Positions 8,891 through 60,019 of a stretch of 64,000 nt of DNA are shown piece after piece. The notes beneath the pieces were generated by a model, which was given only the letters and a program-made list of their open reading frames with translations, made no database searches and was not told where the DNA came from. Made by a program: the position numbers and the translations under genes. This DNA comes from Utricularia gibba (lineage: Eukaryota > Plantae > Magnoliophyta): contig NEEC01000004.1 in assembly GCA_002189035.1 (NCBI GenBank), forward strand, positions 2,976,001-3,040,000, in the 5' to 3' direction. Within the stretch, counting starts at the first letter, position 1; every line of letters begins with the position of its first letter.

Positions 8891-8899
8891 CAAACGTGA

Positions 8900-18008: not shown

Positions 18009-21000
18009 ATGTCAAATTCCAGAAGTGAGCATGAAAAGGATGACTCACCGGATGAGAGGTTCACTTTGAAAGCTATGCAACAGGAGTTCACTAGATTGCA
18101 TCGCATTCTAGAAAACATAAATGTCAGGCTTGATGAACACGAAAATTCTTTGCAAAATGTTGCAAGAGCACGAAGACAAGATAATTATGCTACTGGAAGG
18201 GGTCGAGGTAGTCAATTGCATCAACGCATCAACACTGAACATGACTTAAGTGATCAACGAAGTGCAAGGACTGTTGGAAGAAGAGATCGAACCCTGAATA
18301 CTGATGAAGAAGATGACTACATTGAACATAGTGAAAATGATTTTGTGCATGGGGATACAAGAAGATTTCGAGATCAGGGAGGTAGAAGAGACGGAGGAAG
18401 AATTGGAAAGGATGTTAACAACATCAAGATGAAGATACCTCAATTTCAAGGAAAGAATGATCCAGATGCATATCTCCAATGGGAAACAAGAGTAGAACAT
18501 GTCTTTGATTGCAACACCTTCTCTGACGAAAAGAAAATCAGATTGGCCTCCATGGAATTTAGTGACTATGCTGTCATTTGGTGGGATCAATTGGTGGCTA
18601 AAAGAAGGATTGACTCTGAAGAACCAATTCACACTTGGGCTGAGATGAAAAGAGTTATGAGGAGGCGGTTTGTTCCAAACCATTACCAAAGAGATGTTTA
18701 TCAACGTTTGCAAATACTCAAGCAGGGCTCAAGGCCAGTGGAGGAATATTGGCAGGAAATGGAGATTTTAATGATTAGAGCTCATGTTCAGGAAGATAGA
18801 GAAGCAACTATGGCTAGGTTTCTTCATGGGATGAATAAGGACATTGCAAATATTGTGGAGCTTCATCACTACATTGAGATGGAGTACATGATTCATATGG
18901 CCACAAAGGTTGAGAAACAACTATCTAGCAAGAGTTTCGCAAGAGATTTCAACAAGAGGACTTCTGGTTCGAAATTTAGGGGCACCAATGAGATGATGGA
19001 GAGAAATAAAGGGAAGTCATCCATGGAAAACTTCAAATTCGACATCCCATCAAGTTCCAAGAAAGGGGAGCGAACAACACCTCCAAAGGGAACTACCAGA
19101 AACATAAAATGTTTCAAATGCTTGGGGCTTGGACATATTGCTTCTGAATACCCAAATAAACGAGCAATGGTGATTAGGGGCAATGGCGAAGTTGTTAGTG
19201 AAGATGATAATGATCTAGTGGAGACAGAAGCTGAAGTGAGTGATGAGGATGAATTGCCTGTTTCTGGAGAATTATTAGTCACTCGAAGGACGCTTAACAT
19301 TGGAGTGAAGGATAATGATGAGCAAAGGAAGAACTTGTTTCAAACCCGATGCTTTGTTAATGGGAAAGTTTGCAGCCTGATTATTGATGGAGGTAATTGC
19401 ACCAATGTTGCCAGCAACATCTTGGTGGAGAAATTGGGACTACCAACCGTGAGGCATCCTAAGCCTTACAATCTGAAGTGGTTCAATGAAGGAAGTGAGG
19501 TAAAGGTTACCAAACAAGTGCTTGTGACGTTTTCTATAGGGAGATATGAAGATAAAGTCCTATGTGATGTTGTTCCTATGCATGCAAGCCATATTCTTCT
19601 TGGGAGACCTTGGGAATATGATAGAAGAGCATTTCATGATGGTTTCAAGAACAAATATTCCTTCAATTATAATGGACGCTCCATCACACTTGCTCCATTA
19701 TCTCCAAAGAAGGCACATGAAGATCAAGTCAGAATTCTGAGTGATGCTAGAGGCCTTCATACTGATAATGGAAAGCACAAGGTGGTCGTTCGTAAGGGAG
19801 AAGAGATGAGTGAAGTGAAAATGAGTGGAAAAAAGGATGAAAATGAGCACAAAACAGAGAGTGGAAACATGAGAGTTTTCGAAATTGAGAGAAAGAATGA
19901 GAGTCTATTAGCAAGGCCACGTGAGATTAGACACTTACTTCATGCTAGGCAACCATTCATTCTACTCATGTATAAGGATGAAGTTCCTACTTCACCTAAC
20001 CATGCTTCATCCATTCCATCTTGTGTTGTGTCTCTCTTACAGGTATATAAAGATGTTTTTCCAGACGAACTTCAAGGCTTACCTCCCCTTAGAGGGATTG
20101 AGCATCAAATTGACCTTGTCCCTGAAGCACAACTCCCAAACCGACCAGCATACCGAGCCAATCCAGAGGAGACGAAGGAAATACAAAAACAAGTTGAGGA
20201 ATTGGTGTCTAAAGGATTTGTGCGTGAGAGCATGAGTCCTTGCTCGGTGCCGGTGTTATTGGTTCCAAAGTCTGATGGAACTTGGCGGATGTGCACTGAT
20301 TGTCGCGCCATCAACAACATCACAATCAAGTATAGACATCCTATCCCTAGACTTGAAGATATGCTTGATGAGTTGCATGGTGCTTGTGTTTTTAGTAAGA
20401 TTGATTTGAGAAGTGGATATCATCAGATTAGAATGAAGGAAGGTGATGAGTGGAAAACTTCTTTTAAAACTAAGTTTGGTTTGTATGAGTGGGTTGTTAT
20501 GCCTTTTGGGTTATCCAATGCTCCTAGCACCTTTATGAGATTGATGAATCACGTTCTTAGGCCTTTTATAGGTAGATTTGTTGTTGTTTATTTTGATTAT
20601 ATTCTGATCTATAGTAAAAGTATTGAGGAACATGTTGGGCATTTGAAAGATGTGTTAGATACTCTTAGAAAAGAGAAGTTGTTTGCTAATATCAAGAAGT
20701 GTGTCTTTTGCACAAATAGTGTCTCTTTTCTTGGATATGTTGTAAGTAATGCAGGAGTAACTGTGGATGAAGAGAAGGTAAGAGCAATCAAAGAATGGCC
20801 AACACCTACATCAGTGGGTGAAGTTAGGAGTTTTCATGGTTTAGCAAGTTTCTATAGACGGTTTGTTAGGGACTTCAATTCTATAGCAGCACCCCTCACC
20901 CAGTTGATCAAGAAAAATCATGCATTTCATTGGGGAGATGAGCAGGAACATGCTTTCAAACAACTCAAGAATAAGCTTTGCTCAACACCTCTCCTAGCAC

Positions 21001-22856
21001 TTCCAAATTTTTATAATACTTTTGAAATTGAATGTGATGCATCAGGTTTAGGGATTGGTGCTGTGTTGATGCAAAATGGACGTCCACTTGCTTATTTTAG
21101 TGAGAAGCTTCATGGTGCCACCCTCAACTATCCAACATATGACAAAGAGTTGTATGCGTTGGTTAGAGCTTTGGAGACATGGCAGCACTACTTATGGCCT
21201 AAGGAGTTCGTGATACACACTGATCATGAGTCTCTCAAACATTTGAAGGCTCAAGTAAAGCTGAATAGAAGACATGCTAAGTGGGTGGAATTCATTGACA
21301 CATTCCCATATGTGATCAAATACAAGAAAGGTAAGGAGAATGTGGTTGCTGATGCTTTATCTCGAAGGTACACTCTCTTAGCCAATCTTGATGCAAGAAT
21401 TCTTGGATTTGCTTCCATTATTGACTTATATGTTCATGATCACGATTTTGGGGATATTTATAAGGCATGTGAACTTGCTCCATCTGGACTATTCTTCAGG
21501 AAAGATGGTTTTTTTTATAGGAAAGATAGGCTGTGCCTTCCTTCTTGCTCCATACGTGATTTGATTGTTAGAGAAGCTCATGGTGGGGGACTAATGGGAC
21601 ATTTTGGTGTTAAAAAGACTCTTGATACTCTCACCCAACATTTCTTTTGGCCACACATGAGAAGGGATGTTGAAAGAATTTGTTCTAGATGTATCTCTTG
21701 TAGGAAGGCTAAATCAACCACTGCCCCTAATGGTTTGTATACTCCACTCCCTACTCCTTCCCAACCATGGGTGGACATTTCTATGGACTTTGTTTTAGGC
21801 TTACCTCGTACCCAAAGGGGTAGAGATTCAATTTTCGTTGTTGTGGACAGGTTTTCAAAGATGGCACACTTTATTCCCTGCCATAAAACTGATGATGCAT
21901 CTCATGTGGCTGATCTCTTCTTTAGGGAAGTTGTTAGACTTCATGGAATGCCCCTAACTATTGTCTCTGATCGAGATGCAAGGTTTCTTAGTCACTTTTG
22001 GAGAGTTCTTTGGAGTAAACTTGGCACTAAGCTGTTATACTCAACAACATATCACCCTCAAACCGATGGGCAAACTGAGGTAACTAATCGCACACTTTCT
22101 ACCTTACTTAGGATTATGATTAAATCAAATCTTAAGACTTGGGAGGAATGTTTGCCACTTGTTGAGTTTGCTTACAATAGAACCATGCATCTGACTACTA
22201 AATTATCTCCATTTGAAGTCGTTTATGGTTTTAATCCTCTTACACCTTTGGATATGTTATCTTTGCCTTGTGATGAGAAAGTTAGTTTAGATGGCAAGAA
22301 GAGAGCTGATGCAATCAGAAGATTGCATGAAAAGGTGAAACAACAGATTGAATGCAACAATGCAAAGTATGCATCAGCAGCAAACAAGGGGAGACGCAAA
22401 GTTGTATTTGAACCTGGAGATTGGGTTTGGCTTCATCTTAGGAAGGAGAGATTTCCCACAAAGAGAAAGTCCAAACTTCTACCTCGTGGAGATGGCCCTT
22501 TCCAAGTTGTTGAGCGCGTTAATGATAATGCGTACAAGCTAGATTTACCAGGTGAGTATTCTGTTCATTCAACTTTTAATGTTGCTGATTTGTCTCTTTT
22601 CGACATGGATACAGATTCAGGGACGAATCTTCCTAAAGAAAGGGGGGATGATGAGCCCCAGGAAGATAATGAAGTATATTTGAAGAATGATGAGGAATTA
22701 GAAAGAAAGAAGATTCCACCAGGACCAATGACTAGAAGCAAGACAAAGATGGTTGAAGATACACTTAAGGGTCTACTCAATACCATTGGAATCAAACATG
22801 GGCTTGAAGACATCCCATCAAAAGAGCTCAACTACTTGAAGATGGACTTACCTTAG
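18009..22856 (+). CDS. CRM gag-pol polyprotein (gag, PR, RT, RNase H, integrase, CR motif), about 1615 aa; open frame but RT YFDD reads YFDY
   Basis: First ATG at 18009. Motifs: zinc knuckle [14 protein letters not shown], protease [17 protein letters not shown], RNase H ECDASG/DKE/TDH/ADALSR, integrase HHCC plus SMD/SDRD/QTE, GPF and GPMTRSK. The stop lies 208 nt inside the 3' LTR. Confidence 0.93.
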
Positions 22857-37139: not shown

Positions 37140-37960
37140 AAATGTTCTAAATGAGCATGTAAGTGTTGTCTTCACTCGATCCTTAGGTGCAACCGCCACT
37201 TGGTTGTAACCTGAATAACCATTAAGAAAGAAATAATATCTCTTCCCACTAAGCTTATCAAGCATCTAGTCAATAAAAAGGAGGGGTAGTGGATCTTTAG
37301 TGTGACATCATTCAATTTTCATTAATCAAAACACACTCTCCATCCGTTTCGCACCCTTGTGGTGACTTGCTTCCCTTCAAAGTTTGTAACAGCTATTATC
37401 ACTATCTTTTTGGGCACCACGTGAATCAGACTAACTCATTTGCTCTCTGAAATCGAGTTGATTGTCTTTGCCTTGAACAGCTTCTCAACTTCTCTTTTCA
37501 CAATTTCCATAAGCATCGTTTTTAATCTTCTCGGTCTTTGTCGGATTGGTTAGGCATCATCCTCTACGAGTATCTAATGCATGTAAAATAATGACTAGAT
37601 TCCCTTGATGTTCTTGAGAGTCCAACCAATGCTTTCCTATGTTTCTTCAGCAGCTTTGAGAGCTTCCCCTCCTAATTCGAAGTAAGATCTTCACTAACAA
37701 TAACGTGCAGAGCACTGCCTTCTCTCAATAAAATATACTTAAAGTGTTCATGGAGTGGCTTCCCATCCTCAATTGGCAAGAGGCATTCGAGCGAGTTTTG
37801 TTTTGCGATGAGTGGTTGTTTCATCTATGTGGAGGTTGGACAGTTTGCTTGAGAGTGCCTGAAGCCGAAGAAGGTGAGTGTTGCTATAGGGACAACATCA
37901 ACCCAGCTCAAGGAGCTACGAGATGCTCATGAGCCAGGAACGTTAATCTCACCAATGTAG
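37140..37960 (-). pseudogene. Degenerate Athila RT fragment
   Basis: The reverse complement reads ...HVVPKK...RVRNGWRVCFD...MLDKLSGKRYYFFLNGYSGYNQVAVAPKD with stops and frameshifts. Confidence 0.7.
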
Positions 37961-38449
37961 ACTTGGTGGAAGATGTTGTTGCCATCATGGGTACACCCTT
38001 TGATTGTGGGGCTACACATTAATTTATCTCAAGGGGATATGCTAGGAAGTTAGGGAAAACACGTATGTGACCCTTCAAAGAAAGTGTTTGGTAAATCAGA
38101 TTTTGGGTTTTCAATGAATCAATACTTCAAAAAAAAGAAAGTTGACCCTCAAGGAATGAATATCCTCACAACCTAATTTATGGAAATGATGTGACACTCA
38201 CAAAGTAAAGAAGACGTAGGAAATGTTTGGAATAGAGAACTTACTATAATACAATGCAACAATGCATTCTTCAAAGATTGAGATGGAAGTAATGGACCAC
38301 ACAAGACATTATAGAAAAAATTGGATAAGTCTAAAATTATTCAAGAATTAGAAGTAAGAGTATTGTTTTCAAAATACATTATAATCAAAATTATTTATAA
38401 ACAGGAGTGAGACTATTCGTCTATAGGTAGAGCAATATGTCTACTCAAA

Positions 38450-38830
38450 AAAAAAATTATTAATAGTGAACTAGGAGGTCACAGTTTGTTAATTACATCA
38501 TTGAAACCAGTACTAAATCTATATAAGAAATCCACAAGTGAATAGTACACTTTCTTTAAATTGTGAATCTTTGAACTAATATGAGGTTGTGTGCATATAT
38601 TAGACCCCAACATAAGTTTAAAAAAGATTGGTGTTACTGCTTGGTGATAACTCTCTAAACCCATTTTCTACCTTCCACCCAATTTGTAAAATTTGTTTTA
38701 AGATAGCAATTAAATGCTTCTCTTCTTTCGATTTCCATTGACACTTTGATTTATTGCAATCATTGTCTTCATTTACATTATCATTGCTTTTATTCTTTTT
38801 TCTTCTATTGAATAAAATACAATACAAAAG
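38450..38830 (-). pseudogene. PIF/Harbinger-type Myb/SANT-like DNA-binding ORF remnant
   Basis: Two frames read QWKSKEEKHLIAILKQ...GWKVENGF and PHISSKIHNLKKVY, typical of Myb_DNA-bind_3-like Harbinger proteins. Confidence 0.6.
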
Positions 38831-40948
38831 AAAGATATAAGAAAAGTATAAACTTTTTACTATAAGCAGATTACAATTATTTACAAAAACAATACTTCTT
38901 ATGACAATGTCAATTAGTGACTGTCTTAATAAACATCATATGTCATTTATTTTAGTAAAGACATGATCCATTTGATGGTGATTCTGCAAGTGAACAGAAA
39001 CCATCAAAGTAATAAAATAAGATCATATCCATAGGGAATGGTTATTGGAATTTTCTTTTCAAAACAAAGAGTTAAAAAACCTGAAAACAAAAGAAAGATT
39101 TGGTTTTGAAGACAATAAGAAAAGTGACCTTGGATCTAAGATCCACCTTACTTGGAACTCGCCCTTGCGTGTGTGCAAACCTTGATAACTGACCTGCTTG
39201 CGCAAGCTTTGGGGGTGTTATACTAAAATAGTGCTACTCGATGACTGTTATAGCACCGTCCCTTGTTTTGTGGGATTATGGAATACACCACGCCATCAGA
39301 GCCATTTCACCTCTTGTGATAACCCATGTTTTCCCCACACCCAAATCTAACCCCTACACCTCTCACCTTGCAGACAGATTAGACAGAATGTGTCTTACCA
39401 ACGATGTACGATTGAGCCCTTCTCCTTAGGTGCTTGAGGCCAACCTTTAATTCTTCTACACTACCTTAGGGTTATATAATACTAAAGATCACGTTGGTAA
39501 AGAAAACGTTGCGAAAAACAAAATCAATCCTCAAATTAAATGTTGAAAAACATAGTAAGACAGTCACGTGCGCAGGACTTGCGCAAGCAAGGGTTTATAG
39601 CAAATCCTCAGCCGCAAGCACTCACACGCGCATGCTCGATTCTAAACAACAAAAGTTGATGAAAAATAAAATGAAGGAAATCCAAAACATGCTAGACTCG
39701 ACTCTAAACCCTAGATTGATTCTCTGATCGTCCACACTGACTCTTGTTTTAGGTCTTCACGTTTGGATCTTATATAATGGTGGGACTTGTCGGGCTTTCT
39801 TGATGGGCTCACATCAAATTTTCTATCCGAATCTTCTAAAATTTGATACAAATCTTCTAGGATGATATCCAAGTTTTCTAAGATAAGATGCGAATCTTAA
39901 CTTATCCAAGAATCTTTGACCGAGTCTTCATCCGGATAAACCAATTTTTAGCCTCCATCAAAGCAGCTCGAAAATCCTCCAAATTATTCCAAATTTATCC
40001 TGAAAAATCATAAAACATACTTTCATTCTAAAAAGATCCAAGTAGTATGAAAGATATAAAATTCTTCTAAAATCATAAGGAAAGTGGGATAAAAAGAATG
40101 ACAAACCCATCTAAATGAGTTTTAAAAAGCACAATATAAGTGACACAAAATCAATTATGACCATTATTTCAATAAATAATAACATATTAATTATAATAAA
40201 AATTTCTCCTAAAAGCTTGCAAATAATCAACTATAAGCAATGTGAGAACAATAATAATTGAATGATAGATTGGAGGTGGGTGTCCTCGAGCCACCAGCAA
40301 CAAACAAAAAGTATAGATTTTTGATGGGTTTAAAAAAACTGGATTTTATACATAATATATTTAATCATCAAAAACATTTATGTAACTTCATACATAAATG
40401 AGATAAATACACTTATATAAATCAATTCATCTAAAGAATTTAATGGATAATCCACTTTTAAACTCTGCAGAACAATTTTTCTTGGCACACAATTCACAAG
40501 CCTCAAGGGGAAGTGGATTACCACAGGACCTTCATGCATACCTTGTACAACAAAATGTCAACAATTGGAGCTCGTGAAAGGCTGACTGACGTTTGAATGC
40601 AAGAATGCCCAAATTCCTATATTGCAACTAGTATCTCTCGCTGAACCCGGCATGCAGCTTGCAATTCCTATATCTCAATCAAATCCCTTCCGCTCACGAC
40701 AAGATTTTGCAGGAATGAAAACTCTTCTCCTCTTTGCTGACCATAGGACTTCAAGAATAGACCGAAGCTCATTTTCCAACAATTCGGAGGTAGAAAAATA
40801 GAGAAGTTTTGCATCTTCTTTTCTAAAATTTCCAGCCCATCTCTTGCAATATATTGATTCACCGAATTATACGTGACTTGTGTTTTCTCGTAGTGATAGT
40901 TGAATCATAGCCCTCCAATCTGAGGATGTCACAGAATGGCAACACACT

Positions 40949-42912
40949 TCAAAATTCAGAAGCGATCATAATCTTCTCTGGTTCTATACAAAGGTGAGGA
41001 ATGCATTGGACATCCTTGAGCACATCGGATAGGTTTTTAAGCACTAGAAGAATTTGTTGGAGCTGTCTGTGTGTATTGTGCACCATAAAGAACATATGAG
41101 CTTCCTTCTGCACCTCTATCATGCTATAGCCCGGCTCTTTTCTAATACCAGATCCTTTCATTACTCGCCGGATCTCCATGACATTTTTCCATAGACCAAA
41201 AGTAGCATAAGCATTGGATAGGACTACATACTTACCAGTGTTCTGAGGTTCTAATTCAAAGAATTTCTTTGCAGAAACCTTCAAAATTTCCATATTTCCA
41301 TATAATTTACATGCACTGAGTAACGCACCCCATACTGCTGGGTGCCCCTTAAAAGGTGATGTACAAACGAATGAATAGGCTTCTTCTATTTTGCCAGCAC
41401 GACCCAAGAGATCAACCATCACAGCATAATGTTTTCCTCTTGGATACACACCATAATCTCTCATTGATGAGAAATATTTCTTTCCTTCCTCCACTAAGCC
41501 AACATGGTTACATGCAGAAAGTAGTGCAAGATACGTGATTTGGTTTGGTTTTAAACCTTCATTTAGCATCTGTTGAAAAAAATCCATGACTTCAAATACT
41601 CGTCCATGGAGTCCATATCCATACATCAAAGAAGACCATGTTACAACGTTCCTGTTTAGAGATTTACTGAACACCCCAAATGCATCAGAAGGGCTACTGC
41701 ATTTGAAATACATATCCATCAGTGCACTATTTACTACAACATTACCATTAATTTGACTCTTGACCAATATGCCATGAGCTTGTTTTCCTTGTTCAAGAAT
41801 GGCGAGGGAAGAGCAGGCTCTGAATACAGACGCAAATGTATACTGGTCTGGCATCAAACCAAATTGTCGCATTCTGTGATAGAGACTCAAGCCCACGTCC
41901 TCCAATCCCTTTTGAACGTATCCAGCAATTATTGCATTCCATGAAACCATGGTTCTGATTTCTAAGATATCAAAAATAAGGTGAGCAGTATCTAAATCAC
42001 CACTTTTTGCATAAAGAATCAAAAGCTTAATCTTCAGATACTCAGTTGGAACGAAACCAACAACCACCATGTGCCAATGAATTCTTCTACCTTTCTTATA
42101 CTGTTTCCGGAAAATACATTCTTGCAAAATGAGAGAATATGTTTCATGATGTGCTTGTATTTCTGTGCAGCACAATATTCCCACTGCTTCTTTAAGTCTT
42201 CCAGAATAGCAAAGGTCCCTTAGTATTGTATCTAAGTGCCATGTGTTCCTCAGTGGGTTAACCAGTGATCTGCAAACATTTTAAAGTCTCTTCTTAAACA
42301 ACGACATCCATTCCTATTAGCCTTCCACCCAATGAAAACAGTCACAGGTATAAATCTAAAAAACAACGGATTTCAAATCCTCCCCATCTTATGCACCAAT
42401 AAATGATAACTGATGTACATGAATGATATGAGTTTTATTCCTACTTACTACGAAAGCAACTCACATTCAGCATTCAATCTAGCCCAGATAAAGGACCAAA
42501 ACGAATACGAGAGTAACTAAACCATAAATTCCATTATACATGACCAATGAACTAGTCAAATCACGAATCAAGACAAAAAAAAGTGATTGAATTCAGATGA
42601 ATAAACTTCTAACCTGAAGTTATTGTTCTCAGTTTTCGTTCTTTTCACCATGGTGGAAGTTTTACCAGCAAACATGGGTCCCAAGATAATGGGATTCTCA
42701 CCCGAGGCCCAACCACTGACACAAAAGCTTCGTGTTTTATTATACATAGTAGGTACATGGTACACGAAATTGTCTCCGACTTCAATTCTACAGCTGGGTT
42801 TTAAAGAGTTGGCAAAGTAGGCAAGAGGGGAGTACTGTAAGCAGCAGCACAGGTGACCAAAGCCACGGAAGAGGAATGATACCTTCCTATAAGATGCTAT
42901 CTGATACTTCAT
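40949..42912 (-). CDS. PLS-class E/E+ pentatricopeptide repeat protein (At4g16470-like), no DYW; predicted coding exons 42912-42614 and 42269-40949, 539 aa
   Basis: PPR motifs VSWNAIIAGYVQ, PDQYTFASVFRAC, VTWSSLMYGYG, HYAVMVDLLGRAG, VWGALLSAC and the E-domain KEPGYSMIE. The frame stays open upstream of 42184 to an acceptor TTTGCAG at 42270. A GT donor at 42613 gives an in-frame phase-2 join. The orthology call rests on my recollection of At4g16470. Confidence 0.85.
42614..42912 (-). CDS. First coding exon: transit-peptide-like sequence plus thymidine kinase N-terminus (P-loop)
   Basis: SGENPIILGPMFAGKTSTMVKRTKTENNNFR resembles the plant TK1 N-terminus (SGE(I/V)HVI(V/M)GPMF(A/S)GKT..L.R). An acceptor TTTTACAG lies 14 nt before the ATG. 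Confidence 0.7.
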
Positions 42913-44416
42913 ATTGATGGAAGGTTCTGTAAAATTATTATTTTTTCATTTGATAATAAAAAGAATTTCAATAGCTATAGAACCAAGCTTTGTAGCAGAC
43001 AAGGGTTGGTGGTGTTCTCACAACGCCAACTACACAAACATCTAATCAAAGAACCATTTTTTGCAATCAAATGAAACAACAAAACAAATTTAGAAAACGA
43101 GAAATCGCAACGCGTTCAAATCAAACCAAGATTTGATATTTCCTGATGGAAACAAAAAGCCTAGAGAACTGCATTTTGCATGTGGAAAGAATAATCACCT
43201 CTTGCTTCAATAGAATCCGCACCGAAAGACATCGTGAGCTGCAGAAGTTCAAACCTGTAAAACACTAGTAAAAACCAGAAGACGCCGAAGCAAAAAAATA
43301 AAAGAAACGCACATACCCTCACACAAGCCGAATAAGATTGCAGGAAATCAGCATAAAATTCAAGTAAACCTGAAAATTACTACCGCCAAATTCGAAATCA
43401 CCATGAGATTTCATCCATGAGTAGAGTCCGCGGTCCCGTGCGTCCGAGTATTGGAGTGGGACAACCGACACCGACTACCTTAGAGCATCGCCAGATACCA
43501 ACCATCCCAGAGTGGAACCGAGTGCCACTTCAGAGAACGAAAGGATGTGAAAAAGTGAAGGGAGACATCGAAATGACTAAACTACCCCTATTACCTTCTT
43601 TCTTCGTCTTTTCTTTCCTTATTTATTTTAGGAATTCAACAGTGTAATTGAGTCATGTGACGGCTCCTCAGGTCAGTGGGGCATGCTATATTGAATAGAT
43701 CGTCAGTCTTTCTCAATACTCAAACTAAGGAAGGTTAGCAAAATTTTATTGTATTAGTTTTGTGACTTGAGTACATGTGTATGCATCACATGTTTGAATC
43801 ACGTCTTCAACCTGCGATTAGACTATGTTTAATCAAAACTGTAAAGAAATACAGATTGGATGAGAGTCTGTTCAAGGAAGAGATGACATAGAGGAAGGAA
43901 AGGACGACACATAGGATTTGGGAGAGTTTCTATGAACTCCAATCATTCAACTTTTTCTCTCACTCATATTATTTTTTGTTTTGTGCAATTTAAATAATAC
44001 GCATTCATGAATGAGCAGCGTGCATGGGCCAAGTGTTAATAGCCACACCTTGTACTTCTTCCACATCACTTGAACTTTCCATCACACCCCCTACAAACTG
44101 GGCAACATTGTGAGCCATGAGACTCAGTTTGTCTTGAAGAAATGTAAATGCTTGCGTCCCTAAGTCTTTTGTAAATATATCTTCCAATTGAGAGCTTGTG
44201 GAAACATGCATAGGGCCAATAAACCCTACAAGGTAGTGTTGTCGAACTACATGGAAATTGACGTCAAGGTGCTTGTTGCGCTCCCTGAAGATGGAATTCT
44301 GGGTGATATGGAGTGCAGATCGACTGTCAGTCCAAAAAGGGATAGGGAGCGTGGTCAACTGCTGCAGATCACGTAGGACATAAGACACACATAGAAGTTC
44401 CAAAGTTGTGGCCCCC

Positions 44417-45714
44417 TGATGCATTTCTTTTCCACAACAAATTTTAATACTTTTAAAACTCATAAAACACAAAAGCGTAGTACGGGTGTCGAACACAGGG
44501 AGTTGTTTTTGAGTGAAAGGTGAGGTACCCCGAATACAACTGTCACGATTTGTAAACGGTTTTGAAGGTAAAAGGTGCGAGAAACGTTGGTGATGAAGCT
44601 TGAGTAAGGGAATGAGAGGGGTTTTGAGCAAACAACTAAAATGAACGTAAGCGATAAACCTTAAATAAAGTAAATGTTCATGGATTTGGAATCCTATCCA
44701 GCTATGTTCATTGCATCTTCACTCTTCTCTGGTCTTCTCGAGTACTCGGTTATAGGAGTAAGGAATTGCCTACCCTCCCTTACACTCTCTTGCAAGAAGG
44801 CACGGGAATAGCCCGATGTTGCTCCTCCTTTGACAAACGTGAAAATAAGAGGTCCTGCCAGCATACCCTCACGGCCAAATTGCGCGCGTGTGCCTGAGTG
44901 TTGCCAATGACCCAATGAGTGCAGATACGAGGTCACTACCTGTCCATTGATCCTGAGGTACGGCCATAGACAAAGCGTAGTCTTCCTTCTGCCAAAAGGG
45001 CGTGAGTTGGTACTTTCCACCTTGCTCCTCTCCAAAACTCGCAGGAAGTGTAGTTTAGGGTAATTATCCTAAATCTTATCTATTAATTTTATTAGTTTTA
45101 ATTGAGTTTTTCTAGAGGCGCACACGTGGCAGGAAGTGAGAGAAAGAGGGCATCAGATGGCGACAAATTGGATCTTTCCGAGCTGACATTCCCTTGATTT
45201 CTGGAAGACTGTAGACGCCTAATCATGAGCCTTGACGTGTGGAACACGGGAGTCTCTGACAGGCGACATTATTAGCGTACCAGTGTCAGACGTTGCTTGC
45301 AAGTCATCCCAAGTTCAGCAGAATCACAGGAACACGAAATCTCAGACTCTCATTGAAGTTCCATTCTGTTCAGATGTAGTTAGTTTTAGTTTTAGTTTTC
45401 TCTTTTGTTTTTCTCTCTCTAGAACCTTGTTTGCGTTTTCCTTAGTTTGTATGGCCGTTCGCGGCTAGAAACTTCCGTTTTTGGGTTGGAACACCACCAG
45501 ATCTATGTATCGTTAGCTTATCTTCATATTTTCTCTGAATCCGAACAAGTTTTGTATGTCTTCGCGCGACTATGTTGCAGTCTTTCTGTAACAGTCCCCT
45601 AAACCCTAAACCCTAAACCCTGAACCCTAAACCCTAAACCCTGAACCCTGACACTTCTAATCACATTTAGACACAAAAGAAACCTAAGAAATAGTAAGAA
45701 AATGACACTTAACA
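44417..45714 (-). mobile_element. Athila-like solo LTR with an internal inversion (45051-45596) and a telomere tract
   Basis: It interrupts Ale RNase H codons EYQAIG/ATT, with TSD CCCCC/CCCCT. 45651-45714 is the reverse complement of the LTR start at 54573, while 45051-45596 matches the same LTR in the forward direction. Confidence 0.8.
45597..45650. repeat. Interstitial plant telomere repeat (CCCTAAA/CCCTGAA), 7 units plus a partial unit
   Basis: CCCTAAA x3, CCCTGAA, CCCTAAA x2, CCCTGAA, CCCTG. Confidence 0.95.
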
Positions 45715-48700
45715 CCCCTATGGCTTGATATTCAGCCTCTGCATATGATCGAGCTACGATGATCTGTTTCTTTGCCTTCCAACATATTAAGTTTGGTCCT
45801 AAGAAGATACAAAACCTAGTCACCGACCGTCGAGTGTCGGGACACGTACCCCAATCAGCATCACAGAAGGCTTCCGATTGTAACGCCCCACCCCCAGCAT
45901 AAAACAAACCATGGGCTTCCGTCTGTTTGAGATACTGTAGTAAGCAATTCACGGCTGCCCAATGTGTGAGAGTCGGGTGATGTAAGAATTGAGTGAGTTG
46001 TTGGACGGAAAACGTAATATCAGGTCATGTGAACCCCAAATACAATAATGGCCCAAGTACTCTACGATAAGCATCCTTATTATGTATCGGGTTGTCAACA
46101 TAAGATGATAATTGCACCCCTTTGGCCATGGGTGTGGCTGCTAGCTCGCATAAGTTCCTACCAAAGTCTTGTAGCAAGTTGCCGATATATTTCTGCTGTA
46201 ACAACAATATGTTGCCATCGGATCGAATGATTTCTATGCCAAGGAAAAAACATGTTGGTCCAAGATACTTTATAGTGAACTGATCATGTAAAGTCTTCTT
46301 AATAACACGGATCTCTGCCAAGGTGTTACTAGAAATCAGGATGTCGTCTACGTAGACCACCAAAGTTGTCACTTGATCCAAATTCTTCTTTACAAATAAG
46401 CACAAGTCAACTGCAGACTGTGTATAACCGATTGAGAGCAAGGTTTGAGTGAGTGCCAAATTCCAACAACATGCCACTTGTTTGAGTTCATAAATGGACT
46501 TCAACAATCGGCACACCTGTCCTTCCTTGGTAGCAGTATAACCATCCGGGAGATACATAAATGTTGATGTCAACGTGATGGATGCGGAAATTCAAAGTTG
46601 CAGCTAATGCCAATACCAACCGAATGGTGGTAATTTTGGCAACTGAGGCGTAGCATTCTTGGTAGTCAACCCCTTCTATTTGGGCATAGCCCTTGGCGAC
46701 TAACCGTGCTTTTCATTGTAAGAATTCCCTTGCAGCACCATACTTGTTACAGTATATACATTTTGAGGCAATAGCTTGCTTTCCAGGTGGTAAGTCAACT
46801 AGAATCCAGGTTTGGTTCTTCTCCATTGCCAACAATTTGTCTGCCCTAGGAGACTCCCACTCAGGCACCCCCTTCGCCTCTTGATAGGCGTCGGTATAGG
46901 CGCATGGACATGGGCTACGACATCATGTATGTGATCAAGGTGGTCAATGGATGATTGAGGGAGAGGTGGTAATGCCTGAAGGTTGCAAATGTAGTCATTA
47001 AGGTAGGATGGAGGATGAGTGGCATGGCACGACCACTCGTCCAAAGGATAGGATAGGAATCAAGGGTGTGAGGAGAATTGGAAGGAAGCGAGAGTAGCAA
47101 AGATGGTGGTGTAGGAGGATTTGTGAAACTAGGAAGGGTAGCATCCAAAATGAGATTAGGTGAATTAGGAGTTGGATCAGGACTATACGCCTCCTCCAAG
47201 GATTCATCAAAATGAGGCACGAGAGTGCCAGAAGTGGAAAAATCAGGAAGAGGAACCAAAAGGGGCCATCATGTGTGGAAAGAGAAGCTTGAGCCTTAAA
47301 AGGAAAGTAGAACTCATAAAAACAAACATGACCAGAGACAAACACAGTTTTGGTTTCCAAATCAAATAACTTATACCCCTTTTGGCCTACAAGGTACCCA
47401 ATGAAGACACATTTGCGAGCATGTGGAGCAAGCTTATCCCCCACAGTGTTAGAATTAGACGCATAAGCAAGGCAATCAAAAACACGCAATTGGTCGAAGG
47501 ATTGTCTCTGCACTCCAAGAACATCTAGTGGACTTTTCCCCCCAAGTATTGGAGTAGCCAATTGGTTGATAAGATAGGTAGTAGTAAGCAGAGTTTCGCC
47601 CCAAAAGGATTTGGGGAGACTGAATTGAAAGAGGAGGGCACGAGTTACCTCTAAGAGATATTTGTGTTTATGCTCAACCCGAGCGTTTTGCTCCAGTGTA
47701 TACGGACAAGATGATTGTTGGGTAATGCCCAACTCCACAACGAGGTCAAGTCAACATTACGAAACTCCTGACCATTGTCGGTGCGAAGGATTAACATTGG
47801 GCAAGAAAATGTTTTTTCGACTTTAGAGATAAAGGCTTGAAACAAGGAATAAAGATTTTGCTTACTAGGAAGTAAAAAAGTTCATGTAGAGCATGAATAA
47901 TCATCCATGATGGTGAGAAAGTAGGTAGTTCCTGTGATAGTTGGGGTTTTATACGGTCCTCATTGGTCACAATGCAATGATGCTAAAGGTTTTGATGCTC
48001 GAGATGAACTAGGAGAAAAGGGCAATTTATGAAATTTAGCATAATGGCAAATATCGCAAGAGGCAGAATTTAAAGAACAAGGAATGGGCAAATACTTAGC
48101 CTTAGAATCAGAAATGTGCCCTAATCGACAGTGCCATAATAAGTTTGAGTCAACATCACTGACAAACCTGCTGAATAAAACAGTGTTTTGGAATAAAATG
48201 CTAGCAGATTCAAAGCAGAAGTCCTGGAGTTCCTTAGCCAATGCGCCTGTCATGGCAGCTTGGTAAAGGGTCAAGATACTTGACAAAAAAGATTTCCTTT
48301 CCAATACATATAGGTTCCTACGAGTTCTTTCAACCCCTAGTACTTGCTTAGAGGGCCAATCCTGTAAAATACAGCATGAGCTGGTAAAAACAGCACACAA
48401 AGTGTGGGAAAGGCAAAGCTTGTGGAAAGAAATAAGGTTGCATTTAAATTGTGGAACAAAAAACACATTGTGAATGATGAGTGAGGGATGAATACAGACT
48501 GTTCCACAATGTGTTACAGGTTGTATGGAGCCATCAGGTAGGGATAATAGTACCGGGCTAGGTAAAAGTTTGAGGTCAAGGAAAAAATCATGATCACAAC
48601 ATACATGAGATGTAGCACAAGTGTCAATGATCCATGATTGATGACGTAAAGATGGAGGAGGTAAGGTACCTAAAAAATCACCAAAGTCGGCCAGGTGAAC

Positions 48701-49744
48701 TTGCTCAGTAGAGGCGTTGAGATTCAGAAATTTTCTCAGCTCATTAGATACCATTAGTTGCAAAGAAGATTCCCTTGCTACGGAGTCCTTGAGCAAGAAT
48801 CCCTCATATCCCTATATGCCATCTCCCACAACAGCAATGAGCTCAATATGGGGTGGTATGGTTTTCCTCAACTCAAACCACCATAGTGGTCGTTTATTTG
48901 TCCCGACGTAGCATTCAGAGAGGTCATGCCCTTTCCGATTACATTTGGAACAAAATTGACTATTAGCATCGTTCCTCTTGTAGCCATCATCCTTCATCTT
49001 CTGTTTAGACTAATAACTCCCCAACTCCTTGAAGGTGAGGGTTGTTTCAAATTCCATATGCTTAGTGTGTCGAGATTCATCAACCTATAATAACAAAGAG
49101 TAAGCCTTGTCCAAACTTGCCACAAGCTCCATGGTTAGAATTTGGTTCTTTGTAACTTGATATATATCATTGAGACCATGAAGGAAATGACCCAGGTGCA
49201 TATCATGCTTCATATTCATGCACCGTTTGCAATTAGCACAAGAAGCACATGAATAATACAAAGCATCTGCCGCATTAAATAGGGATCTGACAAGAGTGAA
49301 GTATTCAGGGAGAGTTTTGGAACCTTGAGTAAAATGGGATAAATCTCGCAGCATATCGCACATAATTGAGAGATTCGTCTTCCCATAATGTTTGTCCAAT
49401 GCCTCCCAGATGTCTTTGGCTGTGCCAAAGCTCTTGAAAGCAGTGACGAGTTCGCGCGAAATGGAGTTATGAAGCCAAGACCTTGCTTCACTGAGCCGTC
49501 AATTAAGGCAAGCTTATTCTTTACAGCGAGTGCTAGTTGAACTCCTTTCTTCCAATCAGAACAATTTCTGGGAGTGAGGAGTTCTGGCACTAGGGCCATG
49601 CTGGGATTATCAAGAACTGAGATCTGAAGAGGGTCATTTGATTGCATATCTGTAGTCTTCTCCTTACCCACGCAGTTCATGAGGGTGAGAAGTCATTTGA
49701 GGTCTTATTCTTTGATTTATGTCGACTCAGCCATCTTGTTCATC

Positions 49745-49762: not shown

Positions 49763-50352
49763 TGTAAAGAAACACAAATTCGATGAGAGTCTGTTCAAGG
49801 AAGAGACGACATCGAGGAAGGAAAGGACGATGCATAGGATTTGGGGGAGTTTCTATGAACTCCAATCATTCAACTCTTTTTCTCACTCACATTTTAATAA
49901 AGATTTGCGGTGAATACTTTCTTATGTAAGTAGAATCAATTAGCATATTATCTCTCATTTTAATAGAAATTCTCAGAATACTTTACTTTTGAACTACATT
50001 ATAAAATATAGGTAGTTTATAATTTTATTAGTTATCATACTTTTTATATTGTTTTTTAATTCTCAAAAAAACAACATAATTTACAAATTTTCAGATAAAT
50101 TAATAAACGAATTCAATTAATATTTGTAAAATCCATAGAACATTCATAAATATAATATGTTTGTATTTATTTCAAATATAATAAAAATTTTAAATATTTG
50201 AATTTTAATAAATATAGGAATACACATTCAGTATCTATGAGAAAATTAGTAAAATACACGATTTAAAAAAATGATTGGCAAAATACCCATGATTTTTAAA
50301 GGCTTTGTAAAATACATATACGGTTTGATTGTCATAACTTGGGTGAGTTGGC

Positions 50353-54572: not shown

Positions 54573-57032
54573 TGTTAAGTGTCATTTTCTTACTATTTCT
54601 TAGGTTTTTTTTATGTCTAATTGTGATTAGAAGTGTCTAATTAAGGGTCTATAATATGGGATTTAGGTTTTTATCTAGTTTAGGGTAATTATCCTAAATC
54701 TTGTATTTTATGTAATAATTTTACTAATTTTAATTGAGTTTTTCTAGAGCTGCACACGTGGCAGGAAGTGAGAGAAAGAGAGTATCATATGGCGACAAAT
54801 TGGATCTTCCCGAGCTGACATTCCCTTGATTTCCGGAAGACTGCAGACGCCTAATCATGAGCCTTGACGTGCGGAACATGGGAGTCTCTGACAGGCGGCA
54901 TTATTAGCGTACCAGTGTCAGACGTTGGTTGCAAGTCATCCCATGTTCAGCAGAATCACAGGAACACGAAATCTCATACTCTCATTGAAGTTCCATTAGG
55001 CTCAGACGTGACAGAGTTAGTTTTTAGTTTTCCCTTTTGTTTCTCTCTCTAGAGGAATTTTCCTCTAGCTTCTCCCTAGAACCTTGTTTCGTTTCCTTTA
55101 GTTTTTATGGCCGTTCGCTGCTAGAAACTTCCATTTCTAGGTTGGAACACCACCAGATCTATGTATCGTTAGTTATTCCCATGGAAAGTGATAACCCCAA
55201 GGTTTCGGAGTCCATTATTTTGGGACGACCATTCATGGCTACTGCAGGAACTAAGATTGATGTCCAAGCAGGCACCATCAGTCTTCAATTCGATGGACAA
55301 GTGCTTGACTTCAGTCTTGACAAAGCCATGAAGCATCCTGATCACATCACTGAGATATATGCAATCTCCACATGTGAAACCGACACTGATCACTATGCGA
55401 TGATCCATGAACAAGGTCCCGAATTCGATTTAGACACGGAGATTTCTCAATCTGAAGACTTTCCTCGTGCTGAACTTGAAGTCTTTAATCATTCAGATGA
55501 TCCACCCGACGAACCTTATGCGCAGGATGTTTCTTTTCTTAGCTTGGAAACACCTAGCGAGCCGCTAGTACCTTCCATTATTCGAGCACCATCATTAGAG
55601 TTAAAGACTTTGTCCGAACATCTGAAATATTTGTTTCTTGGTGATGATGAGACCCTACCCGTTATTATTTCTAGTTTACTAACCTTGGAACAGGATGAGA
55701 AGCTTAAGGCTGTGCTTCAAGAGCACAAACAAGCAATTAGTTGGACTTTAGCTGACATCAAGGGAATCAGCCCTTCTATTTGCACTCACAGGATTTACCT
55801 AGAGGATGGGACGAAGCCATTTCGACAGCCACAGAGGAGACTGAACCCCCCGATGGTGGAAGTGGTCAAGAAAGAGATTTTGAAGCTGTTATCTGACAGT
55901 GAGTGGGTTAGCCCTGTGCAGGTTGTCCCAAAGAAGACTGGTATCACAGTGATGAACAATGAACAAGGGGAACTTATTCTCACAAGAGTGCAGAATGGTT
56001 GGAGGATATGTGTGGACTATCGCAAGCTTAATTCCACCACCAGGAAAGACCACTATCCCCTTCCTTTTATAGACCAAATGCTTGAACGACTTGTAGGGAA
56101 GAGCCACTATTGTTGCTTGGATGGATTTTCCGGTTTCCACCAAATTCCCGTGGCTCTTGAAGATCAATCCAAGGTAGTTTTTGTCTGCCCTTTTGGAACT
56201 TTTGTCTATCATAGGATGCCATTTGGACTATGCAATGCACCTGCCACTTTCCAAAGATGCATGGTGAGTATCTTTTCGGAGTATGTGGAAGAAATTATTA
56301 AGGTCTTCATGGATGATTTCACTGTTTATGGCAATAGTTTTGATGAATGCTTAGGAAACTTATCTTTGATTTTGAAAAGATGTGTTGAGACTAACCTTGT
56401 GCTTAATTATGAGAAGTGTCACTTTATGGTTGAGCAAGGCATCATTTTGGGACATGCAGTTTCCAAGAGAGGAATTGAAGTGGACAAAGCAAAGGTTGAG
56501 GTAATCCAAAAACTATAGAAGGGTTACCTTAGTCGTGCATCATGAGTTAGGTACTATCAGAGCTATGGAATGTCTATCTGTTTTCATACTTGAGGACAAT
56601 TAAGTGTGGGGGAATATGTTAAGTGTCATTTTCTTACTATTTCTTAGGTTTTTTATGTCTAATTGTGATTAGAAGTGTCTAATTAGGGGTCTATAATATG
56701 AGATTTAGGTTTTTATCTAGTTTAGGGTAACTATCCTAAATCTTGTATTTTATCTAGTTTTTCTAGAGGTGCACACATGGCAGGAAGTGAGAGAAAGAGG
56801 GTATCATATGGCGACAAATTGAATCTTCCCGAGCTGACATTCCCTTGATTTTCAGAAGACTGCAGACGCCTAATCATGAGCCTTGACGTGCGGAACACGG
56901 GAGTCTCTGACAGGCGGCATCATTAGCGTACCAGTGTCAGACGTTGCTTGCAAGTCATCCCAAGTTCAGCAGAATCACAGGAACACGAAATCTCAGACTC
57001 TCATTGAAGTTCCATTCTGCTCAGACGTGACA
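54573..57032 (+). mobile_element. Deleted Athila derivative (partial 5' LTR, PR-RT, PPT, partial 3' LTR) nested in Ivana gag
   Basis: LTR starts TGTTAAGTGTC at 54573 and 56617. The Athila-type PPT AAGTGTGGGGGAA lies before 56617. No TSD: the right end is fused to Ivana sequence about 350 bp downstream of the insertion point. Confidence 0.85.
55037..56518 (+). pseudogene. Athila protease C-terminus plus RT reading frame, preceded in frame by LTR sequence
   Basis: IILGRPFMAT, WVSPVQVVPKKTG, WRICVDYRKLN, LDGFSGFHQI and VFMDDFTVYG. The frame ends at KAKVEVIQKL with no RNase H or integrase. Confidence 0.85.
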
Positions 57033-60019
57033 CTTGTGAAGGAGATTCGAGGATTGGGGGAAAAACTTGAGGATCAAAAGGTGATTAGCAAGGCAATCAT
57101 GAGCCTACTTGCAAGATTCTAGCCAAAGTTATATGCACTTTAGATAGAAAGAAAAATCCTTGACATTATTGAAGGAAAGCTCCATCAACTATATCCTGAA
57201 TATCCTGTTACTCCAGAGCCAACATTTAGAGAGTTCATGATTGAGTTGCAATCTACAGAAAAGAGATTGGAACTAAGAGATGGTTATGAGTTTGAGAAAA
57301 CTTATGGTGAAGCTGCTCTCCTCACCAAAATGCAGAATATGAATATAAACTCAGGTGCAACTAATAATTTCAAGGATCTCAAATCAACAACCATCAAACA
57401 ATCACCAATGTCAATCCCAACTTCAACCATGGGTAATCAGAAGTGCAGGCATTGTGATAAATCCAACCACAAGAGTGAAGATTGTTGGACTTTAAGCATA
57501 AATGCTTGCAAGCACTGCAACAAACAGAATCATAGGAGTGAGTTTTGCTGGTGGAAGCCTGATGCTTTGTGCACAAAATGCAATCAAAGAGGCCACTTCA
57601 TTGAATTTAAGGAATGTTCATTGAGGGGGAGTAGATATTTTGTTACATTCATTGATGATTATTCATGTTATTATTGGGTTTACTTTCTTAAAAGCAAGTC
57701 AGAAGTTTCTCATATCTTTTGAAAATTCAAAGTGATGACTGAGAATTAGAGTGGATGCTCCTTAAAGATGATTAGGTTAGACAATGGAAGTGAATTCTAC
57801 AATAATAGCATGAGAATAATTTGTGAAAATGAGGGAATCATACATCAATTCACAGTACCCTATTCTCCACAACATAATGGTATATGTGAAAGGAGAAACA
57901 GAACAATTCTTAATATGTCAAGATGCCTATTGTTTGAGAAAGATCTTCCTGTAAATTTTTGGGCTGAAGCGGTATCTACATCTGTATATCTATTGAACTT
58001 GTTTCCTTCTAGGGCGATTAGTGGAAAAACCGCCCATGAAAAATGTCATGGTTATATTAAAAAGGTTGATCATCTCAGAATCTTTGGTAGTCTGTGTTTT
58101 ACTCATGTACCAGACCAAAAACAAGGAAAACTTGATAAGAAATCTATATCTGGTGTATTTGTTGGTTATAGCAACACTATCAAGGGATATAAAATTTATA
58201 TACTTGACGAGAAGAAATTCATCTTTAGTCATGATTTCTCTTTTGATAAAGGTGCAAAGTACACTTTGATTGATGATTGCATTGATGTAAATGATGCAGA
58301 AGCTCACAAAAATCTTGAAGGGCATAACACTCACGTGAAGGGTGACCTATGGACATTCATATCTCAGAAGAAGTACTGTAATGAACTTCTTGAAAGGTTT
58401 GGGTTCAAAGATGTCAATCCTTCAAATTGATGAATTTCCATGCCTAGATAGTAGGACATCATTTCAAGGTCAGTCATCTTAAATTCTTTTTTGAGTAGAG
58501 CTTTGAATTCCTCAATCTTCCTTTCATTACCTGAGATAATCATAAGATCATCTTCCTTTCCTTTAACATATAGTGAGTAATCACTATATGTTTTTATGAA
58601 ACCAATACCATGCAGAAAGTTATCCATACGTTAGGAGAAAACAATCAGGGAAGGAATGTCGATTGTACTACTTATAGAACTATGATTGGAAGCCTCATCT
58701 ATCTCCAGCATACAAAGCCTGACCTGTGTTTTTTTGTAAATGTCTTATCTCGCTTCCTCAACAAACTAACAACAACTCACATGGCAACTGTTAAAAGAGC
58801 TTTCAAGTACATAAAATCTACTACTGATTTTGGACTGTTCTATCCCTATGAAGGTGAAAAACCAGTCTTGAAACTTAAAGCCTATTCTGATAGTGATTAT
58901 GGTATGGCTCAAGATAGCAAAAGTACATCAGGTGCACTTTTCTTCTTGAATAAGAGCCCTGTTGTCTGGTTTTCGAAGAAACAAAAGGTGGTAGCGCAAT
59001 CAACAACTGAAGCAGAATACATCTAAGCAACACATGCGTCGAACTATTGTGTTTGGTAGACGTAGATGTTAAACGAACTTGGATTCATACAAAAGGAAGC
59101 TACACATCTGCTTATGGATAATCGAGCTGCAATCTCCATTGCCAACGATCCAACAAACTTCAGCAAAGCCAAACACATAAGAATTAGGTATCATGTCATA
59201 AGGAATTACATCAAAGAGAAGAAGATTAAAGTGCAGTGTGTTGAGAGTGGGAATCAGCTTGCTGATGGGCTCACCAAAGGTTTGAACAGAGTTCAGTTTG
59301 AGCTAGCAAGGAAGAACATGAATCTCATGACTATGGAAGACTTTCTCAAGTTGGGAGATCTCGGTCTGGGGGGAGTGTTGGAGATCAGCCTCAATCCAAA
59401 GTTTGAAGGTGATTGGAAGCACAAATCTTGTGTCATAATGTCATGTTTCAGATAAAAAAGGTGTTGGATTTCGAGCATGGAAGTGTTGGGTTCGAGTTGT
59501 TGGGCTTTTTTGTGTGTTTTCAATAATTGTAGCCCACTGCTGGGTAACCTAGTTGTTGGGTATATATAAACCCTACTAAGAATACGTGTCAATTAGGTTT
59601 TCGATCATTCTTATTGTTCATGAGTCGTTTTTCATCCAAGGTGATCTCATAAGCATTATCCCTTTGTTCCTTCCCAAGACTCTATCTTTCTTGTTTCAAC
59701 AGTCAGCACACTCCCTAAAGTTCAGAATTCATCGGTTTCAATCAATTATAAAATGAGTTTTGTCTTAAAAAAATGTATTTTGATTATAATTATGTATTTA
59801 GTTGAGCTTATTATTTTATATATGTATTTGATTGGAATTTAATTATAGATATGTATTTTCTTATCATTAATCTCTTGCTTATTTTATTATTTTTCATTTT
59901 GTTATTGTTACTATTTAATTATTGTTGTGTAACTTTCGATAATTAGGAAATGGATAAATTTTATATTAAATAGTTCCTCTCAAATGATTAGTTGACAATC
60001 ATGCTTCAACAAAAAAAAA

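Follow-up and report, generated by a model that had tools for sequence, protein, structure and literature searches.

We analysed a 64-kb stretch of the genome of Utricularia gibba (contig NEEC01000004.1, forward-strand positions 2,976,001 to 3,040,000; this whole stretch is called the window, and coordinates are positions in it), which carries on its minus strand a gene joining an exon derived from a TK1-type thymidine kinase (TK) to an exon for a pentatricopeptide repeat (PPR) protein. This chimera is a genuine spliced mRNA. ATG 42912 (minus strand) opens a frame in which about 70 residues poor in acidic residues are followed by SGENPIILGPMFAGKTSTMVKRTKTENNNFR; the exon ends at the donor AG/GTTAG (last exon base 42614), the PPR exon starts after the acceptor TTTGCAG/A (first base 42269), and 42912-42614 plus 42269-40949 (299 + 1321 nt) make a single open frame of 539 amino acids (aa). 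Frame, splice sites and the acidic-poor stretch of about 70 aa before the P-loop had all been described in an earlier, sequence-only reading of this DNA, and each was found as described, the junction in RNA as well. The first in-frame ATG of the PPR frame is at MVVVGF, with none upstream of the repeats, and an upstream exon is therefore needed.

The PPR exon contains tandem PPR motifs (Pfam PF13041, E 3.7e-30; PF01535, E 2.2e-29) and an E motif (PF20431, E 2.9e-18, residues 323-385 of the 439 in the PPR part), and no DYW family was listed for it even at E up to 1; by Pfam its class is PLS-type with E motif and without DYW. Exon 1 gave a match to TK (PF00265) below threshold (19 aa, E 0.029, 14.6 bits vs a cutoff of 20.6), which covers profile positions 5-23 of 176 only, the Walker A region, where the motif G-x4-GK[ST] is present as GPMFAGKT (42681-42658). 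Of the domains expected from the sequence-only reading, the PPR and E motifs were thus recovered (E 1e-18 to 1e-30), whereas TK appeared as a sub-threshold trace and not as a domain. The PPR part has a dN/dS of ~0.12 against Buddleja, with dS at 1.24 and near saturation, and its open reading frame (ORF) is intact and expressed; the ratio suggests purifying selection, subject to the near-saturated dS.

Transcripts of the chimeric gene

Between 68 and 75% of the words sampled from a 2.1-kb stretch were present in RNA runs of the same organism, and four runs (including X1, X3, X5 and X6) were compared, as contigs, with positions 37600-43500. The features of the gene are as follows.

43384-43520, minus strand: 5' exon E1, a leader that is non-coding and contains several upstream ATGs, its 5' end at or beyond ~43510 (contigs of X1 and X3, joint 43384/43254; ORF analysis)
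43199-43254, minus strand: 5' exon E2, containing ATG 43232-43230 (joints 43199/42715 and 43199/42926)
42614-42926, minus strand: TK-derived exon, long form (isoform B); it includes the ancestral TK1 start codon (ATG 42912), a transit-peptide region that has diverged, and the segment with the P-loop (joint 42926/43199 in X5)
42614-42715, minus strand: TK-derived exon, short form (isoform A), from an internal acceptor (joint 42715/43199 in X1, X3 and X5)
42658-42681, minus strand: GPMFAGKT codons, a Walker A remnant, with the Met codon (42675-42673) that is the first ATG of the 460-aa ORF of isoform A
42270-42613, minus strand: GT..AG intron of 344 nt, corresponding to the 5' portion of what was once TK1 intron 1 (skipped in four of four runs)
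40949-42269, minus strand: PLS-class E-motif PPR exon (Pfam), probably of the At4g16470 orthogroup, stop codon 40951-40949
40541-40948, minus strand: first part of the 3' untranslated region (UTR; contigs of X1, X3 and X5)
39999-40540, minus strand: 3'-UTR intron of 542 nt (joint 39998/40541, GT..AG context; spliced in X1 and X3, read through in X5)
39563-39998, minus strand: last exon, 3' UTR (X1 record 1, X3 record 4)

The junction 42614/42269, which skips 344 nt with GT..AG ends on the minus strand, occurs in contigs of all four runs, as the sequence-only reading had foreseen. An independent TK pseudogene fragment beside an unrelated PPR gene, in frame by coincidence, would fit the sub-threshold Pfam match; it is refuted by this junction in four runs and by the dozens of species with the same architecture (see below), and we give it practically no credence. 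A mismatch-free contig of 2451 nt runs from at least 43510 to 43384, through 43254-43199, 42715-42614 and 42269-40541, and on to 39998-39563, and transcripts have their 3' ends at ~39563. The TK-derived exon had been taken for the first exon of the transcript, which did not hold: two 5' exons lie upstream of it in RNA.

The commoner acceptor of the TK-derived exon in contigs is 42715 (isoform A; depth of the joint 42715/43199 10.4 in X1, 11.5 in X3 and 31.8 in X5), against 42926 (isoform B; 20.9 vs 31.8 for 42715 in X5), contig depth being a rough and poor measure of abundance by which the isoforms are not firmly ranked. Low-depth contigs cross 42716 unspliced in X1 and X6; such contigs are found also in X5, which in addition holds low-depth contigs retaining the intron 42270-42613. 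In isoform A a 460-aa ORF starts from the Met of GPMFAGKT (42675), and ATG 43232 opens an upstream ORF (uORF) of 34 aa that ends at 42645 and overlaps the main start; in isoform B the same ATG is in frame and yields 555 aa, including the 539 aa from ATG 42912. The choice between 42715 and 42926 therefore decides whether ATG 43232 opens the uORF or the main ORF. The 5' leader (43199-43520) has five or more upstream ATGs. The 3'-UTR intron (39999-40540) starts 408 nt past the stop codon, and such features can expose an mRNA to nonsense-mediated decay.

TK1 and the PPR gene in other eudicots

An alignment of the exon-1 peptide with TK exon 1 of 15 species showed that exon 1 of the window is homologous to TK exon 1 along its whole length, both having an M.K.SR.KS.L start and a donor after ...N[GF]R. 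The TK1 origin claimed for this exon is therefore upheld, the start codon and the position of the intron-1 donor included. A tblastn search found both the exon-1 and the PPR parts in the window. In a protein search, At4g16470-like proteins across eudicots were among the matches listed for the PPR part; the best matches, named At4g16470-like by NCBI, have 57-77% identity over >90% of the length, and the Lamiales orthologues have 73-77% identity to the PPR exon. When the PPR part was searched against protein representatives, the matches were long multi-repeat PPRs, with no more than two members of the orthogroup among them. The architecture of exon 1 plus PPR was found, among the matches listed, in dozens of species of asterids, rosids, Vitis and Caryophyllales, in agreement with the old age that had been suggested for the fusion.

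The orthologues differ in size. Among the matches listed, those of ~540 aa consist of a TK-like N-terminus and the PPR, and those of 640-760 aa have a TK-like N-terminus, the PPR and a complete TK C-terminus flagged as PF00265. A class of ~440 aa without the TK piece (Nelumbo, Papaver, Macleaya, Protea, Telopea and the magnoliid Tasmannia) begins with its own short presequence of the MR.P..R.FH.S type, and a 543-aa model of Tetracentron has its own start as in that class, plus extra 3' exons. Three loci with both proteins have the following layout.

Buddleja (L001): TK exon 1 at 10001-10339, PPR ORF at 11163-12461, TK exons 2-4 at 13256-14217; PPR within TK intron 1
Arachis (L003): layout as in Buddleja, PPR inside TK intron 1
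Coffea arabica (L008): 280-aa TK at 8001-12456 and 536-aa PPR at 8001-10175, both annotated from an identical start coordinate

In Buddleja and Arachis TK exons 2-4 follow at most 0.8 kb past the PPR ORF. The N-termini of the annotated TK and PPR proteins are identical within Salvia splendens (116/116) and Coffea (106/106), and differ by one residue between accessions in Olea (116/117) and Camellia (106/107). Outside the window, the evidence for a shared exon comes from annotation and genomic sequence, and it indicates that in most core eudicots a complete TK1 gene houses the PPR in its intron 1, with exon 1 common to both. The PPR product would be made by splicing TK exon 1 (transit peptide and P-loop) from its natural intron-1 donor onto the PPR exon, and the TK product by splicing the same exon 1 across the PPR to exons 2-4. 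The TK-PPR-TK models of 640-760 aa splice from the final codon of the PPR into TK exon 2 (Buddleja L001, 10001-14217) and are prediction artefacts; they include P0003, P0005, P0007, P0008, P0013, P0021, P0092 and others. In UniRef many PPR proteins of this locus are named 'thymidine kinase', and a TK of Citrus (P0373) carries the name PPR; misnamings and fused models are systematic annotation artefacts of the TK/PPR locus. The TK of Ipomoea has a different, conserved exon 1 that is only 45% identical to exon 1 of the Ipomoea PPR, and this enzyme is encoded away from the PPR locus.

Earlier-branching eudicots have another order. In Macleaya (L007, 10001-15076) and Tetracentron (L006, 10001-18255) a PPR with its own ATG is followed on the same strand by a complete TK1, after spacers of 1.6 kb and 5.9 kb, respectively, so that TK exon 1 lies downstream of the PPR. 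The Tetracentron and Buddleja loci have an upstream neighbour encoding an RRM protein in common and are therefore one and the same locus. Nelumbo has a stand-alone intronless PPR, and no TK was found within 10 kb on either side of it. The tandem PPR-TK1 state of Macleaya and Tetracentron is likely, judged from these gene orders, the precursor of the nested one, and linkage would therefore have preceded nesting. The order of steps as we infer it from the sampled taxa would start with an intronless E-class PPR of mitochondrial type, with a short presequence of its own, just upstream of TK1 and in the same orientation; when core eudicots arose, TK exon 1 would already have preceded the PPR, with TK exons 2-4 behind it, and the PPR would have lost its own start. 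Both this order and the loss of the start thus appear to predate the core eudicot radiation. The change of order would be accounted for if the segment comprising the PPR and TK exon 1 had been duplicated in tandem and the outer copies had then been lost; no relic of such a duplication was seen in the loci compared.

The sequence-only reading had derived exon 1 from a duplicated organellar TK gene. Its source is rather the neighbouring or host TK1, in tandem in Macleaya and Tetracentron and nested in Buddleja, Arachis and Coffea; what survives of that interpretation is a real and ancient chimera, and what falls is capture from a duplicate. For core eudicots in general, the chances seem to us evenly balanced that an organelle-directed TK and an E-class PPR depend on a single promoter and a single targeting exon, with splice choice setting their ratio. 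If so, organellar deoxynucleotide (dNTP) salvage and RNA processing would have been coupled for >100 million years, and in species with both halves splice choice may connect an RNA-editing factor with the salvage of thymidine for organellar DNA. The locus also accounts for database errors, namely PPRs automatically named 'thymidine kinase' and fused models of 640-760 aa.

Loss of the kinase half and the probable role of exon 1

A profile of the TK C-terminus, run over all six frames of the 64-kb window, gave a best E of 3.8, and tblastn likewise found nothing; by tblastn and this hidden Markov model the DEAQFF catalytic block and the C-terminal zinc/lasso part are absent from the window. On the exons of Buddleja and Arachis the same profile reached E 1e-20 to 1e-53, and by it the TK C-terminus is absent from the 13-kb locus of Genlisea aurea (L002) and from the 10 kb downstream in Cuscuta campestris (L004). 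Minus-strand tblastn and tblastx hits at 37772-38001, colinear with Buddleja TK exon 2, were considered as a decayed exon and rejected as chance matches because of their TK profile E of 22-32 and inverted order.

Loss of the kinase exons goes with drift of the P-loop segment. Its 29 residues match the consensus at 23-29 positions in 20 of 20 models with a TK C-terminus, at 16 in the window and in Genlisea, at 16-17 in Ipomoea and Cuscuta, and at 10-13 in Prosopis, Neltuma and Heracleum. The segment drifts at every locus tested in which TK exons 2-4 are absent (window, Genlisea and Cuscuta), and in some drifted orthologues the core GK[ST] itself is lost, the core reading GPMLSVK in Prosopis and Neltuma, GTMFAGKA in Ipomoea and GPMLAGKK in Cuscuta epithymum. 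The core GPMFAGKT is intact in the window, as it is in Genlisea and Cuscuta campestris despite TK loss, and the P-loop Met is kept in 10 of the 10 orthologues with a drifted segment. Genlisea aurea (L002, 1742-1986) has the derived ILGPMFAGKTST form of the P-loop and the identical AG/GTTAGAAG donor, as in the window. The likeness of window and Genlisea, TK-exon loss included, suggests a close relationship or an old shared loss in Lamiales.

The locus might still be bifunctional, with TK exons 2-4 more than 41 kb downstream, beyond the window, and an intron much enlarged by retrotransposon insertions. Long terminal repeat (LTR) retrotransposons abound in the window, and very long introns are conceivable in such a setting; however, no RNA contig joins donor 42614 to a partner other than 42269 and no loose end is listed there, the drift of the P-loop flanks equals that of proven TK-less loci, and transcripts stop at ~39563, all of which makes such a distant kinase half very unlikely.

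More improbable still, in our estimation, is the proposal that a duplicated TK fragment gave the PPR its promoter, 5' exon and targeting signal, and that the Walker A motif was kept for binding phosphate or a nucleotide. The intact GPMFAGKT core here, and in Genlisea and Cuscuta campestris without TK, speaks for it. Yet the source is a neighbouring or host TK1 and not a stray duplicate; the ~30 residues stand without the remaining TK fold (no DEAQFF block, no zinc/lasso part); the core has decayed in Prosopis, Neltuma, Ipomoea and Cuscuta epithymum; and the commoner isoform would initiate at the Met within the motif. The P-loop is most likely a vestige within a predicted targeting leader and not a nucleotide-binding site: a function is unlikely because the segment decays without TK, GK[ST] is lost in some orthologues and the long ORF of the commoner isoform starts inside the motif. 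It had been left as either vestigial or ligand-binding; drift in the absence of TK exons favours the former, and binding of phosphate or nucleotide is unlikely.

We consider it probable, with good confidence, that the locus descends from an old TK/PPR locus encoding two proteins and became TK-less in a lineage-specific way, exon 1 having become the leader of the PPR. The TK exons would have been dropped from the locus here, as in Genlisea and Cuscuta, the enzyme would have to come from another TK1 copy, and exon 1 would persist solely as the 5' coding exon of the PPR, providing a start codon and a basic, acidic-poor leader for organelle import, with the P-loop as a drifting relic from which nucleotide binding is not expected. 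The TK-less lineages (the window species, Genlisea and Convolvulaceae) would then show a start codon and basic leader kept while the P-loop decays, and loci with and without TK would form a natural experiment in which a piece of an enzyme core is recycled as an import leader.

Several points weigh against this derivation. The TK loss applies to the window alone (41 kb downstream and 21 kb upstream), and a longer intron is conceivable in a retrotransposon-rich genome; the TK profile search, which spanned the 64-kb window, did not turn up a TK1 gene for this genome. A codon test of the P-loop segment met saturated dS over 27 codons and yielded no informative dN/dS. For the 74 diverged codons that precede the P-loop, chance alone would leave the frame open with a probability of 0.9% (analytic) or 5.8% (empirical), which is weak evidence for selection, and the overlapping uORF in the commoner isoform, together with a 3'-UTR intron in both forms, clouds translation efficiency and the start codon. 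Targeting and editing, finally, are functions that we infer.

Both candidate starts give leaders of similar composition: the first 30 residues from MFAGKT (isoform A) contain six K+R and one D+E, those from ATG 42912 (isoform B) four K+R and no D+E, and those of the Nelumbo presequence six K+R and one D+E. By composition, then, the alternative N-termini are basic and acidic-poor and resemble the ancestral presequences. It is possible, if rather doubtful, that the short form alone is relevant, with its start at the P-loop Met (MFAGKT...), and that the ~75 upstream codons including ATG 42912 are a non-functional leader. Acceptor 42715 is the deeper one in contigs of X1, X3 and X5, the likeness of the 30 residues from MFAGKT to ancestral presequences and retention of the Met in all ten drifted orthologues point the same way, and some gene models (Gossypium and Gypsophila) begin at MFAGKT. 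Against this, the uORF from ATG 43232 in isoform A ends past both candidate starts and should depress them, the long frame has stayed open and retains its homology to the TK start, and models of Cuscuta and Ipomoea retain long exon-1 ORFs despite a similarly drifted exon 1; contig depth, moreover, measures abundance poorly.

PPR editing factors of the E/E+ subclass act with DYW proteins in trans, and like them the PPR of the window has an E motif after its PLS repeats and lacks a deaminase domain. From class membership alone, the protein should have a role in organellar C-to-U editing; its PPR-E body would bind a specific organellar transcript and recruit a DYW deaminase in trans.

Related systems and genomic surroundings

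In grasses (rice, maize and wheat) rps14 lies inside an intron of sdh2 and borrows the targeting exon of its host by alternative splicing (PMC1543663). As there, a guest in a host intron uses the N-terminal targeting exon of the host, and one locus provides two unrelated organellar proteins. Unlike rps14, the guest of the TK/PPR locus is a long-standing nuclear neighbour, a PPR with a former presequence, and not a new transfer from the mitochondrion; the shared TK exon carries in addition part of the catalytic core of the host (the P-loop), and the arrangement spans core eudicots, whereas sdh2/rps14 belongs to one grass lineage. A guest inside the host intron is found in Buddleja (L001), Arachis (L003) and Coffea (L008) but not in the window, where exons 2-4 are absent; splicing of host exon 1 to the guest is seen in RNA of the window gene (42614/42269, four runs). 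The TK/PPR locus would thus be a second, much older and more widespread case of two unrelated organellar proteins with a common targeting exon, with a resident nuclear gene that surrendered its own presequence as the guest.

The probable Arabidopsis orthologue, At4g16470, is a PLS-E PPR, mitochondrial by green fluorescent protein (GFP) fusion (PMC3858439). It is of the same class as the PPR of the window, with PLS repeats and an E motif and no DYW. We know of no target RNA of At4g16470. Its N-terminus may be a decayed form of the TK segment, as the sequence-only reading proposed, and the Gossypium and Gypsophila gene models beginning at MFAGKT would fit this. The plant TK1-type thymidine kinases of Arabidopsis are TK1a and TK1b (PMC7463494). 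The window gene resembles plant TK1 in the start of exon 1, the transit-peptide region, Walker A and the position of the intron-1 donor after ...NG[RS]; unlike them it has nothing past the P-loop segment and hence no kinase. In RefSeq the host gene is named 'thymidine kinase a-like', its equation with Arabidopsis TK1b not being established. A full-text literature search, with subscription journals outside its coverage, found no paper on TK/PPR exon sharing. The arrangement counts as annotated, because it is visible in RefSeq isoforms and in the UniRef 'thymidine kinase' names of PPRs, yet we know of no published description.

Some RNA contigs touch the gene at its ends. A more abundant contig of 1495 nt (depth 19.8 in X1, 23.3 in X3 and 144.6 in X5) matches the window in two patches only, 42971-43004 (an exact 34-mer) and 43199-43254 (4 mismatches in 56), with 60 other letters between them and 1286 nt absent from the window. 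This foreign part gave only chance-level matches of 9-11 nt in the compared loci. The contig is probably from a paralogue of the locus, which may be the copy with TK1 retained, and X6 record 22 may be an assembly chimera formed via the shared 34-mer. E1 and E2 have no repeats in the window and no recognisable conservation in the other loci compared. Another X6 contig matches 39819-40111 at ~95% (14 differences in 293 nt), spanning the acceptor of the last exon, and a dispersed repeat may extend into the 3' terminal exon. A recurring CCCGTATATCGGAGC tail on X6 contig ends resembles a library adapter.

The gene is an island among LTR retrotransposons. No synteny was found between the window and the RRM and PUF neighbours of the Buddleja locus, the flanks being retrotransposons; the main pieces are as follows.

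17976-22856: gypsy element
44005-48796 and 55037-58430: copia pieces

A copia LTR pair at ~43840-43970 and 49763-49893, 92% identical over 131 nt, appears to belong to a minus-strand element and ends ~330 nt upstream of exon E1; the promoter region is therefore very short or partly derived from the element.

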